Source: Octopus sinensis (lineage: Eukaryota). From it: 64,000 nt of DNA. The stretch spans positions 111,104,001-111,168,000 of the forward strand of contig NC_043000.1 of assembly GCF_006345805.1 (NCBI RefSeq), written 5' to 3'. The notes below the pieces were generated by a model, which had not been told where the DNA came from, searched no databases, and worked only from the letters and a program-made list of their open reading frames with translations. Position numbers and translations under genes: made by a program. Shown in pieces: positions 700 through 45,367 of the stretch (position 1 is its first letter; every line of letters starts with the position of its first letter).

Positions 700-1345
700 A
701 ACGTGCTAGGATGGTGATGAGACGAGGAAAGCTTGCCAGGACAGAAAGCATATTGTTGCCAAATAGTGGAATGATGAAGGCAATTCAACCTCAATCCAGC
801 TATAGATACTTGGGAATGTTCGAGGCAGATGGAATCAAACACAATGACATGAAAGAAACGACAAAGCTGAATACCAGAAACATAATATCGACAATAAACT
901 CGCGCACAGTTGCAGTAGTTCGGTTTGGTGCTGGAATCCTGGAGTGGACAGTGAAGGAGCTAAAGGAAATGGACAGGAAGTCAAGAAAGCTCTTAACGAT
1001 GCATGGAGCCCATCATCCACGTGTAGATACTGATCGCCATTACATGAAGAGAGAAAATGGAGGAATGGGACTGATAAATGTGGAAGACTGCGTGCGTATC
1101 GAACTCGAAAGCTTAATGAGATACCTAGCACAAAGTAAGGAAACCTTGCTAGCGACAGCTGAGAAAGAAAGAGTATTGAGAGCAGAGGAAAAGAGAAGAC
1201 AAAGGAAGAAGTACAAAAAGGACATGAAGAAGAATTGAGGGACTACACAATCAATTCCATGTAGCCACAACAGAAATTGCTGGAAAAAATAGGTAGCATT
1301 GGCTGATGAAAGGAACCCTTAAAAATGACCGAGAGATTATGGAAT
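700..1345 (+). mobile_element. Non-LTR retrotransposon fragment (R4/Dong-like), RT C-terminal and thumb region
   Basis: Translation includes YRYLGM, RFGAGILEWT, HPRVDTDRHYMKRENGGMGLINVEDC; deletions and stops present. Confidence 0.75.
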
Positions 1346-7519: not shown

Positions 7520-7848
7520 ATGAAGCTGGGTTACTTTTTCAGTTCTCCTCATCGACATTTTGTTATCCTAATAGTGAATCTACTTGCATCAAGTTTAGTT
7601 TCTTCCGATGAAATTGTCGTTCAAGGAGTCGGTGCCAGTTTCCCAGCCGAAGTCTACGCACAATGGATTAACAATTACATGCCCACGAGAAGAGCTTTCA
7701 CCAACCTGGCAATATACTACAATGTAACGGGGAGTAGTAAAGGCCTGAAAGCCATCCAGCAGGATGAGTTTGTGGATTTTGCTGGCTCTGAAACATTGCT
7801 ACCAGCAAATGCAAGCAGCAACCTGAAAATGCTTCCAACTATGGCTGG
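7520..7848 (+). CDS. Coding exon 1 of 3 of a PstS-ectodomain receptor guanylyl-cyclase-like protein: signal peptide plus N-terminal part of the PstS/PBP2 phosphate-binding domain
   Basis: ATG at 7520, then a hydrophobic stretch (FVILIVNLLASSLVSS). GVGASFPAEVYAQW, GSSKG and VDFAGSE match PstS GAGATFPAPVYAKW, GSSGG and VDFGASD. GG|GTAAG donor at 7849 (phase 2) fits the acceptor at 14505. Confidence 0.92.
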
Positions 7849-8150
7849 GTAAGCTATGAATCTATTATCAATTCTGATCTGATTTCTGTACAGTTTCGTA
7901 CAAACATGCGTTCACGTTCCTTCTTTGACGTTTCACATTCTTCAGTTTTTATGGCGCAACTACAACCTCGACTTTCCGGATACTGGCGGTCAGGAACTTC
8001 TTATAATACGGATTAATTGACGAGTAGGTCAGCAGTTTTTCTCTGGGAGGGAGTTACTGGATTATACCGACTCTAGGACTTGACTCGTATTGAATTTCAA
8101 CGATTCTGGAGGCATGAAAGGCAAAGTTGACCTCGGAGGTTAACTTTTAG

Positions 8151-12692: not shown

Positions 12693-13070
12693 TGCAATGA
12701 CCCAATGGTTAGGGCAACGGAATCGCGGTTGTGGGATCGCGGTTTCGATTCCCAAAACGGGCGTTGTGAGTGTTTATTGAGCAAAAACACCTAATGCTCC
12801 ACGAGGCTCCGGCAGGGGTTGGTGGCAAACCCTGCCGTACTCTCTTTCACCACAACTTTCTCCCACTCTTTCTTCCTGTTTCTGTTGTACCCGTATTTCA
12901 AAGGGGCCAGCCTTGTTACACTCTGTGTCACGCTGAATCTCCCCGAGAACTACATTAAGGGTACACGTGTCTGTGGAGTGCTCAGCCACTTGCAGGTTAA
13001 TTTCACGAGCAGGCTGCTCCGTTGATCGGATCAACAGGGATCTACGTCGTCGCAAACGGCGGAGTGCCAT
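12693..13070 (+). mobile_element. SINE family C (tRNA-derived), near full length
   Basis: A-box-like TGACCCAATGG and B-box-like GGTTTCGATTCCC. Partial copies at about 5210-5390(-) and 13405-13555(-). Confidence 0.7.
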
Positions 13071-13943
13071 AAATTAATTGGTTAGATCTACTCTTTTACT
13101 CTTTTACTTGTTTCAGTCATTTGACTGTGGCCATGCTGGAGCACCGCCTTTATAACATGAGATGTTAACATCTCACAGAAATTGATTGACTGTAGACAGA
13201 CTAAAGAAACCAGAGTTGAAATTTCTTCCCAATCAAATCAGGTCGAACTCCGGTCGGCATTCATTGCAACTGTTTGTTATTATTCCTTCTCTACACTTCA
13301 TTTTTTAAAAACTGTCAGTTTTCATACCAGTAATTATGGAAAAGTAATACAATAGAATAATACTGGTCTCAAATTTTGGTACAAGGCCTCTGTATTAATT
13401 AATTCGTAGCACTCCGTCGGTTGTGACGATGAAGGTCCCAGTTGATCCGATCAACGGAACAGCCTGCTCGTGAAATTAACGTGCAAGTGGCTGAGTGCTC
13501 CGCAAACACGCATGTCCTTAACGGAGATATTCAGCGAGACAGAGTGTGACAAGGCAATACCGGGGGAGGAGTAAGTCTATTACGTTGACCCCAATTCTCG
13601 TTATTTTATCGGCTCTAAAAAGATGAAAGGCAAAGTTGACCTCGGCGGAATTTGAACTCAGAACATAAAGACTGATGAAATGCAGCGAAGCATTTTGCCC
13701 AGCATCCTAACGATTCTGCCAACTCGCCGCTTCATACAATGAAATAATGTTATTAATAAAATTGATATAATAATGTCATCTTAGGGGCAGGAGTGGCTGT
13801 GTGGTAAGTAGTTTGCTTCCCAACCACATGGTTCTGGGTTCAGTCTCACTGCATGGCACATTGGGCAAGTGTCTCCTACTATAGGATCGACCAAAGCCTT
13901 CTGAGTGGATATAGTAGACGGAAACTGAAAGAAGCCCGTTTTG

Positions 13944-14002
<59 letters not shown>

Positions 14003-14505
14003 TTTGTTTGTTTGTGTGTCTGTGTTTGTCCTCCCAACATCACTTGACAACCGATGAGGTTCGGCAAAGGAGACCAATAGAATAAGTATTAGGCTTACAA
14101 AGAATAAGTCCTGGGTTCGATTTGTTCGACTAAAGGTGGTGCTCCAGGATGGCCGCAGTCAAAATGACTGAAAACAAATAAGAGAATATTAAATATGTCA
14201 AATGCTTTGCTCAGGCGACAAGCTGGCAGAATCGTTAACACGCTGGGAAAAAAACGCTGAGTGACATTTCATCTGACTTCACGTTCAGAGTTCAAATTCC
14301 GCCGAGGTCAAATTTGCGTTTCATTCTTTCGAGGGTCGATAAAATAAGTACCAGTTAAACACTGACTTATTCTTTCTCCGAAATTGCTGACTTTGAGCCG
14401 AAATTTGAAACAATATTTCAACTGTTTTGTTTGATGTATATATATGTGTGTTACAGAGTAATGGTAATGTTTGTTTAATGTATTCTATTACATTTATTAT
14501 TGCAG

Positions 14506-17083
14506 GGCCATTTCCATTGCATACAATATACCGGAAGTGAAATCATACGGTTTCCCATTGAATCTGTCCAGAGAACAACTTGTCGGCATTTATAATGGAA
14601 CATTTACCCATTGGAACGACAGTACATTCCTACAAACCAACCCCGGTATAATAATGCCCGCTGCCGAAATACTCGTCCTGGCTCGCCAAAGTAAATCAGG
14701 AACTACCAATATGTTCACGACAGCTCTGAGTGCCTTTGATGCAAACTGGAAACAACAATATGGCGCCTTTTCTGCCGGAACTGTAGACGGCGGTAACACA
14801 CCAGTGAAATGGAATCCACGAGCTGTGAACTATTACGGGAAGAAAAATTCCGGAATGGCAGGAATAATAGCGTCCTTCGAGTATTCAATTGGGTATGTCG
14901 TTGTCAACGAAGCGAAAAAGTTCGACCTGCCGCTTGCAAGAATAGAGAATAGCGCTGGCCATTTTATTTCCCCCGATGATGAAGCTTCGATACAAAAGGC
15001 TTTAGACACGTATTTTCAGAGTTCAATGGGGCGTTCGTTCACAGAAACACTTGTTGATATTCCAGCTGAAGGAATCTATCCAATTCTAGGATTTACATAT
15101 ATGGTTATTCGTCTGAAATACACTGAAAGATGTGAAATTGCTAAAGAGCTTCTTCGCTTTATCCAATGGTTTACAACTGATGACTATGCCAGAACAATTT
15201 GTACCAGAGAAAATATGGTACCAATAACGAATGAACTGAAAGCGAAAATTAAAAGAGAAATATTATTGCATATGCAATGCAATGGAGTCTCGTTGTGGGA
15301 TATGGTGGCAGAAGATAAAAAGAGAGAGAATTACGTGGAAGAGAAATGGAAGACGCCAGTGGCGGTTCTTATTCCTTTATTCTGTCTGCTATTGTTAGCT
15401 TTATTCGGTTACATTATTTACCAAAAGCTGAAGCTCAGAAAAATGATCAACAATAATGAATGGAATATTGCTATCGAGAACATTTTGTTTTATTTCGAAG
15501 ACAAAGGTTACACGAAGAAGTCAAAGATGACGTTTTTTAAATCTATAAGATCGTTCAAATCAATCAATGATATTCCCGACGGTGAAATGATTCTGTCCCA
15601 GATTTTACAATGGCCTGGTCGATGGAAAGGTCAGCAAATTGGAATCAGACTTCTAAATGTGCCAGACTTTGCTCACATAGATCAGAAAACGAAACGGGAA
15701 TTGATATGGATGCGGGAACATATTTTACATTCGAACGTTCTTCGGTTTTATGGCTTAACCGAAATCGATTATAACGACAGGTTTGCCGTTAATGAATATT
15801 GTTCGAAAGGAGTTCTTACCGAAATTCTTCAAGATGGAAAATACAATCTAACCACAGATTTTAAGTTTTCTTTATCTGTCGATATTGTGAGTGGCATGAG
15901 TTACTTACATGCAATGGGTTTAATTCACGGAAACCTACACTCATCTTGTTGTCTGATAGACAGCCGATGGACAGTGAAAATAGCCGATTGGGAATACTGT
16001 CGCCTGTATTCCATCATGAATCCGCTGAAGAATCCGCTGTCATGGAAAAGACAAATTAATGGCGTTCCAGAAGACAAGGATTTTATAGTCAGCGACTTCT
16101 GGGTGGCACCAGAAATATTATCCTCAAACTTTGTGAAATTTCCAACAACTACAAGCGATGTGTATAGTTTCGCCATTATTCTTCAAGAGATATTTAGCCG
16201 AGATGAGCCATACATTGAGTTGGCAGATACTATGAGCATAGATGAAATCTTCAATGCAATTATTTTTAATAATCTTCGTCCTCAAACAAACGAAGATACA
16301 CCCGTACAAGTCCGCCAGATTATGGAGATAGCTTGGTCTTCAATGGCCAATAGTCGGCCGACTTTCGACCAAATTCTTAAAATGCTTAAACATGCAAATC
16401 CATTTCGTAAAAGTGTCTTAGACAGCATGATGGAAGCTATGGAAGAATATACGGAACATTTAGAAATGCGAATCGAAGAAAGAACAAACGAGTTGAATTT
16501 AGCAAAAGAAAGAATGGAGCAACAGCTCAGTCGCTACGTACCAAAGTTCATCTTACCAAATCTCATATCGGATCAACCGTTTCTGGTGAACAATCATCTC
16601 GATAACTGTTTTCTGGGAGTAGAACTGCATGAGTTTAAACAATTCCTTGCTAAAAGACAAATGGATGACGTTGCTGCTGTTTTAAAGAGAATTCATTTTC
16701 TAATTGAAGACAAGACTTCCAAGACGAACGTCTGTCAAATAGCATCGGAAACCTGCACATGGATTTACCTGACTGGAATGGAAAATGAAAGCGACAAAAC
16801 TACCCGCGTGGTTACAATAGCTCACTTAGCATTAGACTGGTTAGGGATTTTTCAAAACAGTGACCCTCACCTACAAGACTTGAAGATCCGTGTTGCGATC
16901 CATATAGGCAATCTACACATTGGTGTAGCAGAGTCTCCGAAAGCTGTTTATGTCTTTGGAACCGGTCTACTTGAAACGAAAGACTTGTTAAATTCGAGTA
17001 AACCTTCCAAAATTCGGATTTCTAAACAAGTCCAAGACATTCTTGCCACTGATAAAACTTTCCATATTGATGAAGATGTAACC
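14506..17083 (+). CDS. Coding exon 2 of 3 (2578 bp): rest of PstS domain, TM helix, kinase-homology domain, signalling helix and degenerate guanylyl/adenylyl cyclase domain
   Basis: TTATTGCAG|G acceptor gives MLPTMAG-AISIAYN in frame. PstS motifs [54 protein letters not shown] at about 15358-15420. rGC-type kinase homology [41 protein letters not shown]. Helix [25 protein letters not shown]. Cyclase-like KIRVAIHIG...VFG...SKIRIS. ACC|GTAAGT donor at 17084 (phase 0). Confidence 0.95.
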
Positions 17084-17121
17084 GTAAGTTCAACTATATA
17101 TATATATACATGTATACACAT

Positions 17122-17190
<69 letters not shown>

Positions 17191-17284
17191 CACACATACA
17201 TACATGTATACATACATGCATGCATACACACACACACACACATATATATATACTCACATGCACACACACACACACACACACATA

Positions 17285-18202: not shown

Positions 18203-18240
18203 GCATTCATAATAAAGTATATATATATATATGTTGTATG

Positions 18241-18330
<90 letters not shown>

Positions 18331-18420
18331 GCTGCAATTTTTGCAACTTGTAATAAAGCCTGTCTTTGTATGAAACAATTGTACTAAAAACTAATCCATT
18401 CTTGTTGCTGCTTCTTTCTC

Positions 18421-18511
<91 letters not shown>

Positions 18512-29631: not shown

Positions 29632-29937
29632 TCATCAAATACATGTTACTGGCTGATTTCGAGAACGAAATCAGCTGAAAAGACAGAAGAAGGAAACGTC
29701 AGTCCTGTTGTAACGGAAGATTGTAAAACACCCGTGAAAGATACCAAAGAAAATCAAGTGGAAAGAAAAGAAGAAATTCCTTTGAAAAATTCCCCTTTAC
29801 ACAAAGATTCCCAACTAGCTATACCTCTAGAACATAATTCCATCACTGCACCGTCTCTACAATTAAATGTACCACAGATCAGAAAAACTTCGCCGTTAAA
29901 CAAAACCAGCAACAAAATATTCCCCCTTGAACAATGA
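29632..29937 (+). CDS. Coding exon 3 of 3: end of the cyclase fold (SSNTCYWL) plus a low-complexity S/T/P/K/E-rich C-terminal tail, TGA stop
   Basis: TATTTTCAG| acceptor at 29631, phase 0 and in frame with track ORF 29734..29937. TCYWL matches the terminal TYWL strand of class III cyclases. Total CDS 3213 nt is divisible by 3. A small missed exon between exons 2 and 3 cannot be excluded. Confidence 0.8.
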   Translation, partial: SSNTCYWLISRTKSAEKTEEGNVSPVVTEDCKTPVKDTKENQVERKEEIPLKNSPLHKDSQLAIPLEHNSITAPSLQLNVPQIRKTSPLNKTSNKIFPLEQ

Positions 29938-44805: not shown

Positions 44806-45367
44806 TCATCATTGTTTGACCGTGGTCAAGACAATGGAATTTACCATGCTACGCCTTCTTCACGGTCCATCATGGCATTACGGAGGTCCTGTTGCTGGAT
44901 GCCTGTATCCCTGGAGATTACATCAGGGTAGGAGAGTGTGCGCCCTCTGGTATTGCGAGTAGATGGCTTCCAGAGGAGAAGGGTAGAAATTGCCTCGTTT
45001 TCAGCTCTACAACAATGTCCAGCAAACTGGACTCTCTTACCTTTCACAAAAGATGACACAAGTGGTAGTTTCCCATATATTTGCATTTTGGTTGGATGGC
45101 GCTTCCACGAGAGATTTTGAGCTCTCATAAGGAGGCGAGTGTAGGTTCCATCCAACCGCCTCTCAAGCTTCTTTGATAACGTCCAGGTTTCTGAGCCATA
45201 TAGTAGAATTGGTTCAACTGTGGCTTTGAAGATTTCAAGTTTGAAGTCTCTGCTTAGATTTGATGACCAGATCTTATGCATGTCATTACAGGCTGACCAG
45301 GCCATACCCTTTCTAGTTAGAAAGTCTTTTCCAGATGATGATATGTATGACCCAAGATATTTGTAAT
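44772..45367 (-). mobile_element. 5'-truncated RTE-clade LINE (3' end of ORF, short 3' UTR, (AGT)n tail) in Rab intron 2
   Basis: KYLGSYISS...IFKATVEPILLYGSETWTL...FAGHCCR...GRTLSYPDVISRDTG, open for more than 150 codons; both flanks are (TAC/AGT)n. Confidence 0.88.

Follow-up and report, generated by a model that had tools for sequence, protein, structure and literature searches.

A 64,000-nucleotide stretch of the Octopus sinensis genome (NCBI RefSeq assembly GCF_006345805.1, contig NC_043000.1, positions 111,104,001 to 111,168,000 of the forward strand), here called the window, carries a three-exon gene for a receptor annotated as 'guanylyl cyclase GC-E-like'. By alignment and fold prediction, its cyclase-homology domain (CHD) keeps the class III cyclase fold and has lost the metal-binding aspartates, the guanine-specifying residues, the asparagine/arginine pair, and the lysine of the KGKG motif, and the chain is predicted to make no cyclic GMP (cGMP). 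The ectodomain is related to the bacterial phosphate-binding protein PstS, and the same kind of degeneration is found in relatives from molluscs and nemerteans. On balance, the product is probably a ligand-binding, non-catalytic single-pass receptor that joins a PstS-type ectodomain to a pseudo-cyclase and gives an output without cGMP synthesis of its own.

The exons were mapped by tblastn of the Octopus vulgaris protein of the same name, P0001 (1070 amino acids, aa), onto the window, and the gene product is 99-100% identical to that protein. By eye, about four amino acid differences separate the two (V to A in exon 1; V to I, D to A, and L to V in exon 2), none of them at a catalytic or ligand position, and the window DNA probably represents another individual, another assembly, or a closely related species. 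The chain has the order of receptor guanylyl cyclases, with a single transmembrane helix, a kinase-homology domain (KHD) of the pseudokinase type, a coiled coil, and a C-terminal CHD. In a Pfam search of exon 2 alone, PF12849 (1.6e-16, 61 bits), PF07714 (protein-kinase-like, 1e-32), and PF00211 (Guanylate_cyc, 3.8e-10) were matched; Pfam gave no match to ANF_receptor (PF01094) in the octopus chain, and PF12849 stands in its place. The parts of the gene in window coordinates are as follows.

7520..7848, + strand: coding exon 1, aa 1-110 with the last codon split; a signal-peptide-like N-terminus and the first PstS-type lobe, including S40, F41, S72, and E91 (tblastn; ATG at 7520 and GTAAGC donor at 7849 read directly; ligands from alignment to PstS structures).
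14506..17083, + strand: coding exon 2, aa 110/111-969; the rest of the PstS-type domain, transmembrane helix, juxtamembrane segment, KHD, dimerisation helix, and most of the CHD (AG acceptor at 14504-14505, GTAAGT donor at 17084; 100% tblastn match; Pfam).
14506..15331, + strand: second part of the PstS-type (PBP_like_2) ectodomain, including R170, S174, G175, and T176 (PF12849, 1.6e-16; phmmer to PstS structures).
15356..15421, + strand: single transmembrane helix, followed by the basic residues QKLKLRK (read from the sequence; helix 392-420 in the AlphaFold2 model).
15422..15598, + strand: juxtamembrane segment with the clade-specific motif EW(N/D)I.IE(N/D)I.FY and a Ser-rich stretch (consensus comparison of dead and active clades, defined below).
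15599..16402, + strand: KHD, a pseudokinase (PF07714, 1e-32; invariant columns; low substitution ratio, 0.04, given below).
16412..16561, + strand: dimerisation or signalling helix (coiled coil), up to a conserved 'VP' linker (GC-A helix alignment; invariant columns; AlphaFold2 helix 747-787; substitution ratio 0.07).
16562..17083, + strand: exon 2 part of the CHD, aa 796-969 (PF00211, 3.8e-10; alignments; Foldseek scores of 0.78-0.87; substitution ratio 0.26).
29632..29937, + strand: coding exon 3, aa 970-1070 and the TGA stop; the last CHD strand, SSNTCYWLISR, and a C-terminal tail of 85 residues that ends with NKIFPLEQ (tblastn 100%; acceptor and stop read directly).

Class III active sites are formed by two chains, one of which gives the Asp pair and the triphosphate-binding Arg, and the other the Asn, the Arg, the base-specifying residues, and the KGKG Lys. 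A preliminary description of this DNA, made from the sequence alone, had set FSDIVGF of the receptor cyclase consensus on octopus GVELHEF, and had reported that the guanine-specifying Glu and second metal Asp are lost where the consensus reads YKVETIGDAYM, and the Cys, catalytic Asn, and Arg where it reads RYCLFGDTVNTASRMES. These registers were checked by phmmer against human GC-A (9bcv), by MAFFT with the active receptor cyclase P0016, and by hmmalign of approximately 110 related sequences, and together with Pfam these methods return one and the same motif register. The first was borne out by phmmer, which places iyFSDIVGF on flGVELHEF; phmmer against 9bcv, MAFFT, and hmmalign agree on the losses at the second; and at the third phmmer against 9bcv gives the register already proposed. 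The profile alignment to PF00211 that the description had recommended scores 40.1 bits (E 3.8e-10) against a cut-off of 21.9, over profile positions 14-163 of 183, and no alignment restores the catalytic residues. KGKG is absent, as had been said, yet its position is not inside 16420-17083, where it had been put, and instead lies in exon 3: exon 2 ends in DVT and exon 3 continues with SSNTCYWLISR, so that KGKG is missing and the YWL that follows it is retained.

Eight positions were scored, namely the first metal Asp, base-specifying Glu, second metal Asp, triphosphate Arg, base-specifying Cys, Asn, transition-state Arg, and KGKG Lys, and at these the octopus chain has, in order, E, A, C, R, V, L, D, and none. 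The seven that fall in exon 2, each assigned from the alignments, are listed here.

16622-16624, + strand: E816, in place of the first metal Asp.
16742-16744, + strand: A856, in place of the base-specifying Glu.
16754-16756, + strand: C860, in place of the second metal Asp.
16889-16891, + strand: R905, the triphosphate Arg of the 'IRxxIHxG' strand, the only catalytic position kept.
16952-16954, + strand: V926, in place of the base-specifying Cys.
16970-16972, + strand: L932, in place of the Asn.
16982-16984, + strand: D936, in place of the transition-state Arg.

The two metal-binding aspartates of class III cyclases are absent (E816, C860), as are the guanine-specifying Glu and Cys (A856, V926) and the transition-state Asn and Arg with the KGKG lysine (L932, D936; VTSSNT across the exon junction). 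Seven of seven catalytic positions are kept by 28 of the 40 receptor cyclases that have no PstS domain and rank among the best-scoring relatives with a complete CHD, against one of seven in the octopus chain. Every alignment supports the earlier statement that this chain could supply neither the Asp-pair half nor the half with the Asn, Arg, and base-specifying residues. Because both residue sets are lost, a homodimer would have no active site at all, and pairing with a fully competent chain would give two sites, both incomplete.

That these losses are an artefact, and that a correct alignment would restore the residues, is hardly credible. Identity to active cyclases is just 17-19%, which leaves room for error, but phmmer, MAFFT, hmmalign, and Pfam agree, the flanking scaffold motifs SG, ALD, RxxIHxG, FG, ISxx, and YWL are conserved, and the one or two residues to either side offer no Asp, Asn, or Arg as a substitute. 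It is also very improbable that cyclic nucleotide synthesis, or some other nucleotide reaction, still takes place in the domain through E816 and other residues. A Glu at the first metal position could bind metal in principle, and R905 is kept; against this, cephalopods have Cys, Ser, or Gly as the second metal ligand, the Asn, Arg, Glu, Cys, and KGKG Lys are replaced by residues that vary between close relatives, and the invariant columns of the domain are all scaffold positions (SG, ALD, RxxIHxG, FG, IS, and F), with no new conserved polar motif among them.

The family to which the gene belongs was defined from two word-indexed named searches, an exhaustive profile search across 1.84 billion representatives, and a third named search that started from active members. 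Its architecture consists of a PstS ectodomain, a transmembrane helix, a KHD, a coiled coil, and a CHD, and more than 100 representatives (at 50% identity) carry both PstS and KHD, many of them from metagenome or raw-read assemblies and some as truncated gene models. Of the 63 sequences that have both PstS and a complete CHD, 18 keep seven of seven catalytic residues and 45 keep at most five, including 21 that keep none. Every named mollusc and nemertean member is degenerate, and every named degenerate member is a mollusc or nemertean: Octopus, Argonauta, Haliotis (two paralogs), Patella, Gigantopelta (three paralogs), Bulinus, the chiton Liolophura, Saccostrea, Ostrea, Argopecten, Mercenaria, and Mya, together with the nemerteans Lineus and Tubulanus. 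Among named members, the complete signature, DEDRCNRK, occurs in the annelids Owenia fusiformis (P0050) and Paralvinella palmiformis (P0024), in Priapulus caudatus (P0058), and in Trichinella pseudospiralis (P0122), whose proteins are candidates for turning a phosphate signal directly into cGMP. The active PstS-type paralog proposed earlier as a search target was therefore found in these four animals and in no mollusc, the mollusc search having covered protein databases and not whole genomes.

A distance-based neighbour-joining tree was built from the ectodomain, KHD, and helix, with the CHD left out. The degenerate sequences, here called the dead clade, form one clade nested among the active PstS-type cyclases (weakly supported, bootstrap 26 of 100), which suggests a single loss of the cyclase residues; the mollusc orthogroup that includes the octopus gene has a bootstrap of 67, and the cephalopods one of 100. 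By sequence comparison, the octopus gene is an ortholog within this mollusc and nemertean clade, and the loss is not specific to the octopus; it is ancient and family-wide in both phyla. Decay is graded within the orthogroup, from E-Q-D-R-C/V-N-T-K in nemerteans, E-A-D-R-C-K-Q in the chiton, and D-N-D-R-V-D-S-K in Haliotis to E-A-C/S-R-V-L-D/H in octopods, in which the second Asp and the Asn have also gone. A partial Asp-pair half survives solely in the Haliotis, chiton, and nemertean orthologs, and from these signatures the earlier state seems to have resembled a chain with the Asp pair only, like adenylyl cyclase C1 or the soluble guanylyl cyclase alpha subunit, with the octopod state fully dead.

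Outside this family, a Hydra vulgaris 'ANP receptor 1' with an ANF-type ectodomain (P0017) has the degenerate catalytic signature K-I-E-S-S-N-S. Given this signature, there may have been more than one origin of fully or largely dead receptor cyclases among animals.

The cyclase-like domain that remains in the octopus has the expected shape. A full-length AlphaFold2 model from an 11-sequence alignment is poor as a whole and has a mean predicted local distance difference test (pLDDT) score of 48, and of this model the CHD part alone was used; its residues 800-980 have pLDDT values of 62-87, with strands and helices in the expected order. In Foldseek searches against the PDB, the best match was the intracellular domain of GC-A (E 5.5e-17), and isolated cyclase domains were matched at template modelling (TM) scores of 0.78-0.87 and identities of 13-18%, with Rv1625c (7yz9_A) at 0.87 and GC-A (9bcv_A) at 0.81. 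In both predicted fold and PF00211 profile, the domain is that of a class III cyclase. The dimerisation helix in front of it had been described as close to consensus, and by eye 11 of the 25 residues of S746-T770 (16412-16486) indeed match human GC-A, with several columns that are invariant in the family (L748, D749, M751, E753, E756, Y758, T759, L762, and E763). The KHD is the best conserved part of the octopus protein and is a pseudokinase as in all receptor cyclases, with HGN for HRD (H584, 15926-15928), R491 for the beta3 Lys, and DWE for DFG (D604).

Selection was followed by comparing the orthologous exon of Octopus, Argonauta hians (L001), and two further sequences, L002 (ERR3431203) and L003 (ERZ21867824). 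The latter are 55%-identical orthologs that group with octopods at a bootstrap of 100, and are probably from other cephalopods. Reading frames are intact in all four. Ratios of nonsynonymous to synonymous substitution (dN/dS) are Nei-Gojobori estimates and are rough, with dS of approximately 1 and near saturation; they are given below for each domain.

PstS-type ectodomain: 0.22 for Octopus-Argonauta, 0.11 for L002-L003.
KHD: 0.04 for Octopus-Argonauta, 0.03 for L002-L003.
Dimerisation helix: 0.07 for Octopus-Argonauta, 0.04 for L002-L003.
CHD: 0.26 for Octopus-Argonauta, 0.18 for L002-L003.

To judge from these ratios, the CHD is clearly under constraint and not decaying, though it is less constrained than the KHD. 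A cyclase-like tail in neutral drift, or a gene that is a pseudogene as a whole, would fit the dN/dS of the CHD (0.18-0.26), which is higher than that of any other intracellular domain, and its identity, which is the lowest. Such a relic is nonetheless improbable, as the four cephalopod-type sequences have no stops or frameshifts, identity is 62% at dS of approximately 1, the scaffold residues are conserved in a domain whose fold is predicted with confidence, and the domain is retained across molluscs and nemerteans with a conserved C-terminal tail beyond it.

At the other end of the chain, residues 34-335 match PstS of Yersinia (2z22) at 1.5e-35 and that of E. coli at approximately 1e-30 in phmmer searches, over both lobes. 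The phosphate ligands of E. coli PstS, which we take to be T10, F11, S38, D56, R135, S139, G140, and T141, correspond to octopus S40, F41, S72, E91, R170, S174, G175, and T176, of which six are identical and two are conservative replacements (T10 to S and D56 to E). All eight positions are near-invariant in the dead and active clades alike; in the dead clade, 43 of 43 sequences have R135, 42 of 43 have G140, and 22 of 22 have S38, and position 56 is D in 19 of 22 and E in 2 of 22. From these residues we infer binding of phosphate, or of a similar tetrahedral oxyanion, by the ectodomain, and continued selection for it in the dead clade. The ectodomain also has extra conserved cysteines and N-glycosylation sequons.

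PstS-type modules were met in other signalling contexts as well. They are joined to the seven-transmembrane domain of class C G-protein-coupled receptors (GPCRs) of the fungi Calcarisporiella and Jimgerdemannia, of Physarum, and of the alga Chrysophaeum (among P0029, P0030, P0032, P0034, and P0036), to two cyclase-like domains in a protein of 1710 aa (P0031), and to a PARP domain in P0207. A PBP_like_2 ectodomain on fungal class C GPCRs has been described (PMC3251606), and this fungal case is the only one of these fusions to other signalling domains for which a literature match was found.

Where the octopus receptor now directs its signal may be read from the change in conservation that accompanied the loss of catalysis. 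Pairwise identities by domain are as follows.

Active members (annelid-annelid and annelid-priapulid): PstS 36-39%, juxtamembrane segment 16-23%, KHD 30-37%, helix 47-53%, CHD 59-60%.
Dead orthogroup (octopus, Haliotis, chiton, and Lineus, pairwise): PstS 37-48%, juxtamembrane segment 31-61%, KHD 55-63%, helix 57-68%, CHD 19-31%.

The Haliotis-Patella and Lineus-Tubulanus pairs raise the dead-clade maxima to 67% for the juxtamembrane segment, 66% for the KHD, and 70% for the helix. As measured by these identities, constraint is inverted, with that on the KHD and juxtamembrane segment highest in the dead clade and that on the CHD highest in the active clade; for PstS the two clades have similar identities. 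In the dead clade, the juxtamembrane segment carries the motif EW[DN]IxIE[DN]IxFY (consensus EW[DN]IPIEDIxFY; window 15440-15500, aa 422-441), and this motif and the Ser-rich stretch are strongly conserved there and not in the active PstS-type cyclases. At the C-terminus, a motif NKI(F/C/Y/H)P(L/I/V)EQ (window 29890-29934, aa 1056-1070) is common to Octopus, Argonauta, and Haliotis, as compared on the C-termini of P0002, P0005, and P0006, with a final V or L added in Haliotis; many orthologs end in a hydrophobic residue, and the tail could be a docking or PDZ-type ligand. The preliminary description had offered two functions, a ligand-regulated dominant-negative partner and a cGMP-independent receptor; since constraint moved from the CHD to the juxtamembrane segment and KHD, the evidence leans towards a cGMP-independent output.

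In the mechanism proposed on this basis, the PstS-type ectodomain would still bind its oxyanion, and the dead CHD would be retained as a structural dimer module that caps the coiled coil. Signal output would have moved to the juxtamembrane segment, pseudokinase, and C-terminal tail, to which it is assigned because constraint rose there when catalysis was lost, and these parts may act as a ligand-dependent scaffold for partner proteins, with no cGMP made by the receptor itself.

The main rival to this mechanism is a dominant-negative or modulatory subunit, an unlikely explanation that still deserves serious weight. By this account, the chain would form heterodimers through its coiled coil and CHD with a competent ANF-type cyclase, both sites of the pair would lack one half, and cGMP synthesis would be silenced, possibly in a phosphate-dependent manner. 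The retention of the helix and CHD fold under purifying selection is in its favour, as is the established construction of class III sites from two chains, and the less degenerate relatives (Haliotis with D..D..R, Lineus with E..D..R..N) still have some of the Asp-pair half and could serve as the complement of a partner. There are also precedents in known receptors: ODR-1 and DAF-11 are receptor cyclases that act as an obligate heterodimer (PMC5225109), and the non-catalytic NPRC suppresses NPRA and NPRB through heterodimerisation (PMC10334801). On the other hand, a fixed interface would be expected to be held more tightly than the CHD, whose conservation is the lowest of any domain in the dead clade (19-31% between classes, as against approximately 60% among active CHDs), the extra constraint is located in the juxtamembrane segment and KHD, the molluscs sampled have no complementary PstS-type paralog with the Asn/Arg half only, and ectodomains of unlike fold classes would not pair. 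The rival appears weakened by the low conservation of the CHD relative to that of a possible partner CHD. It is not mutually exclusive with the non-catalytic receptor preferred here.

Several points weigh against that preferred receptor and the history proposed for it. Octopods carry the substitutions D56 to E and D137 to S. The evidence for ligand binding consists solely of conserved residues, and that for scaffold output solely of conservation patterns. A dead CHD under selection, as estimated from dN/dS values at near-saturated dS, would be expected equally of a heterodimerising inhibitor. An active paralog in cephalopods could have escaped the word-indexed searches, and, given the bootstrap of the single degenerate clade, several independent losses are possible.

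A broader scenario can be put forward tentatively. An undescribed protostome receptor family may sense extracellular phosphate or a similar oxyanion through a PstS ectodomain, with cGMP as its output in annelids, priapulids, and Trichinella; the cyclase would have died in a common mollusc and nemertean lineage and the receptor been rewired to a cGMP-independent output through the pseudokinase, juxtamembrane motif, and tail, with the octopus gene the most degenerate. In the full-text literature searched, no account was found of a PstS-type ectodomain on animal receptor cyclases, of a family split into an active group and a pseudo-cyclase clade, or of a shift of constraint to the KHD; much of the literature was not searchable, and this absence is no proof of novelty. 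A paper on the oyster kinome counted many kinases of the receptor-cyclase group and did not mention a phosphate-binding ectodomain (PMC4883820).

Extracellular phosphate sensing in animals is poorly understood, and this receptor family presents a concrete and directly testable candidate. Its active and dead members share an ectodomain and architecture, making them a natural paired experiment on what becomes of a receptor cyclase after enzyme loss, and as an enzyme and pseudo-enzyme pair they bear on pseudoenzyme biology in general, including pseudokinase-pseudocyclase tandems. The current names of the mollusc genes, 'guanylyl cyclase GC-E-like', 'ANP receptor-like', and 'speract receptor', are misleading.

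The surrounding DNA is low in G+C and contains retroelement debris and numerous microsatellites of the (TA)n and (CA)n types. Exon 2 is directly bordered by long (TA)n, (CA)n, and (GA)n tracts, such as those at 17090-17270 and 18220-18500. Intron 1 has nested inverted repeats at 12910-13555 and 13618-14329, with arms of 130 nucleotides (12950-13079 with 13397-13526, 83% complementary) and 79 nucleotides (13618-13696 with 14251-14329), which resemble short interspersed repeat copies in opposite orientation; ARAGORN found no transfer RNA genes in the window, these repeats included. Ten other open reading frames of at least 130 aa in the window gave no significant Pfam match, and no second gene was found there. 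Two reading frames, at 711-1238 (+ strand, 175 aa) and 44841-45305 (- strand, 154 aa), look by eye only like fragments of retrotransposon ORF2 and have no significant Pfam match.

Pseudokinase domains in receptor cyclases are well known, as are class III chains that lack part of the catalytic set, such as soluble guanylyl cyclase alpha and beta and adenylyl cyclase C1 and C2. Animal receptor guanylyl cyclases, including GC-A/NPR1, retinal guanylyl cyclase, and the GCYs of C. elegans, have the same intracellular order as the octopus chain and likewise a KHD with HGN for HRD. They differ from it in their ectodomain, which is of the ANF_receptor kind (type I, PF01094), whereas that of the octopus is of the type II periplasmic-binding kind (PstS, PF12849); in the octopus, moreover, the catalytic residues are lost apart from R905, and the KHD rather than the CHD is best conserved. 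Bacterial PstS proteins (E. coli 1ixh, Yersinia 2z22) match the octopus ectodomain at E values of 1e-30 to 1.5e-35 over approximately 300 residues, but the octopus domain is joined to a eukaryotic receptor and lacks an ATP-binding cassette (ABC) transporter partner.

Closer parallels exist for the loss of catalysis. ODR-1/DAF-11 (PMC5225109) and soluble guanylyl cyclase are likewise class III systems of partner-dependent chains with a partial catalytic set, yet each of their chains keeps one complementary half, whereas the octopus chain keeps neither and could not complete a site with any partner. NPRC, a non-catalytic receptor of the same superfamily that silences active cyclases by heterodimerising (PMC10334801), is without the whole intracellular region, while the octopus chain keeps the KHD, helix, and cyclase fold, partly under stronger constraint. 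The nearest relatives remain the active PstS-type cyclases (P0050, P0024, P0058, and P0122), which have the same architecture and phosphate-ligand residues and are 33-43% identical to the octopus chain in PstS, KHD, and helix. They keep FFSDIVGF, YKVETIGD, RYCLFGDTVNTASRMES, and KGKG, all missing from the octopus chain, and their CHDs are approximately 60% identical among themselves and 17-19% identical to that of the octopus.

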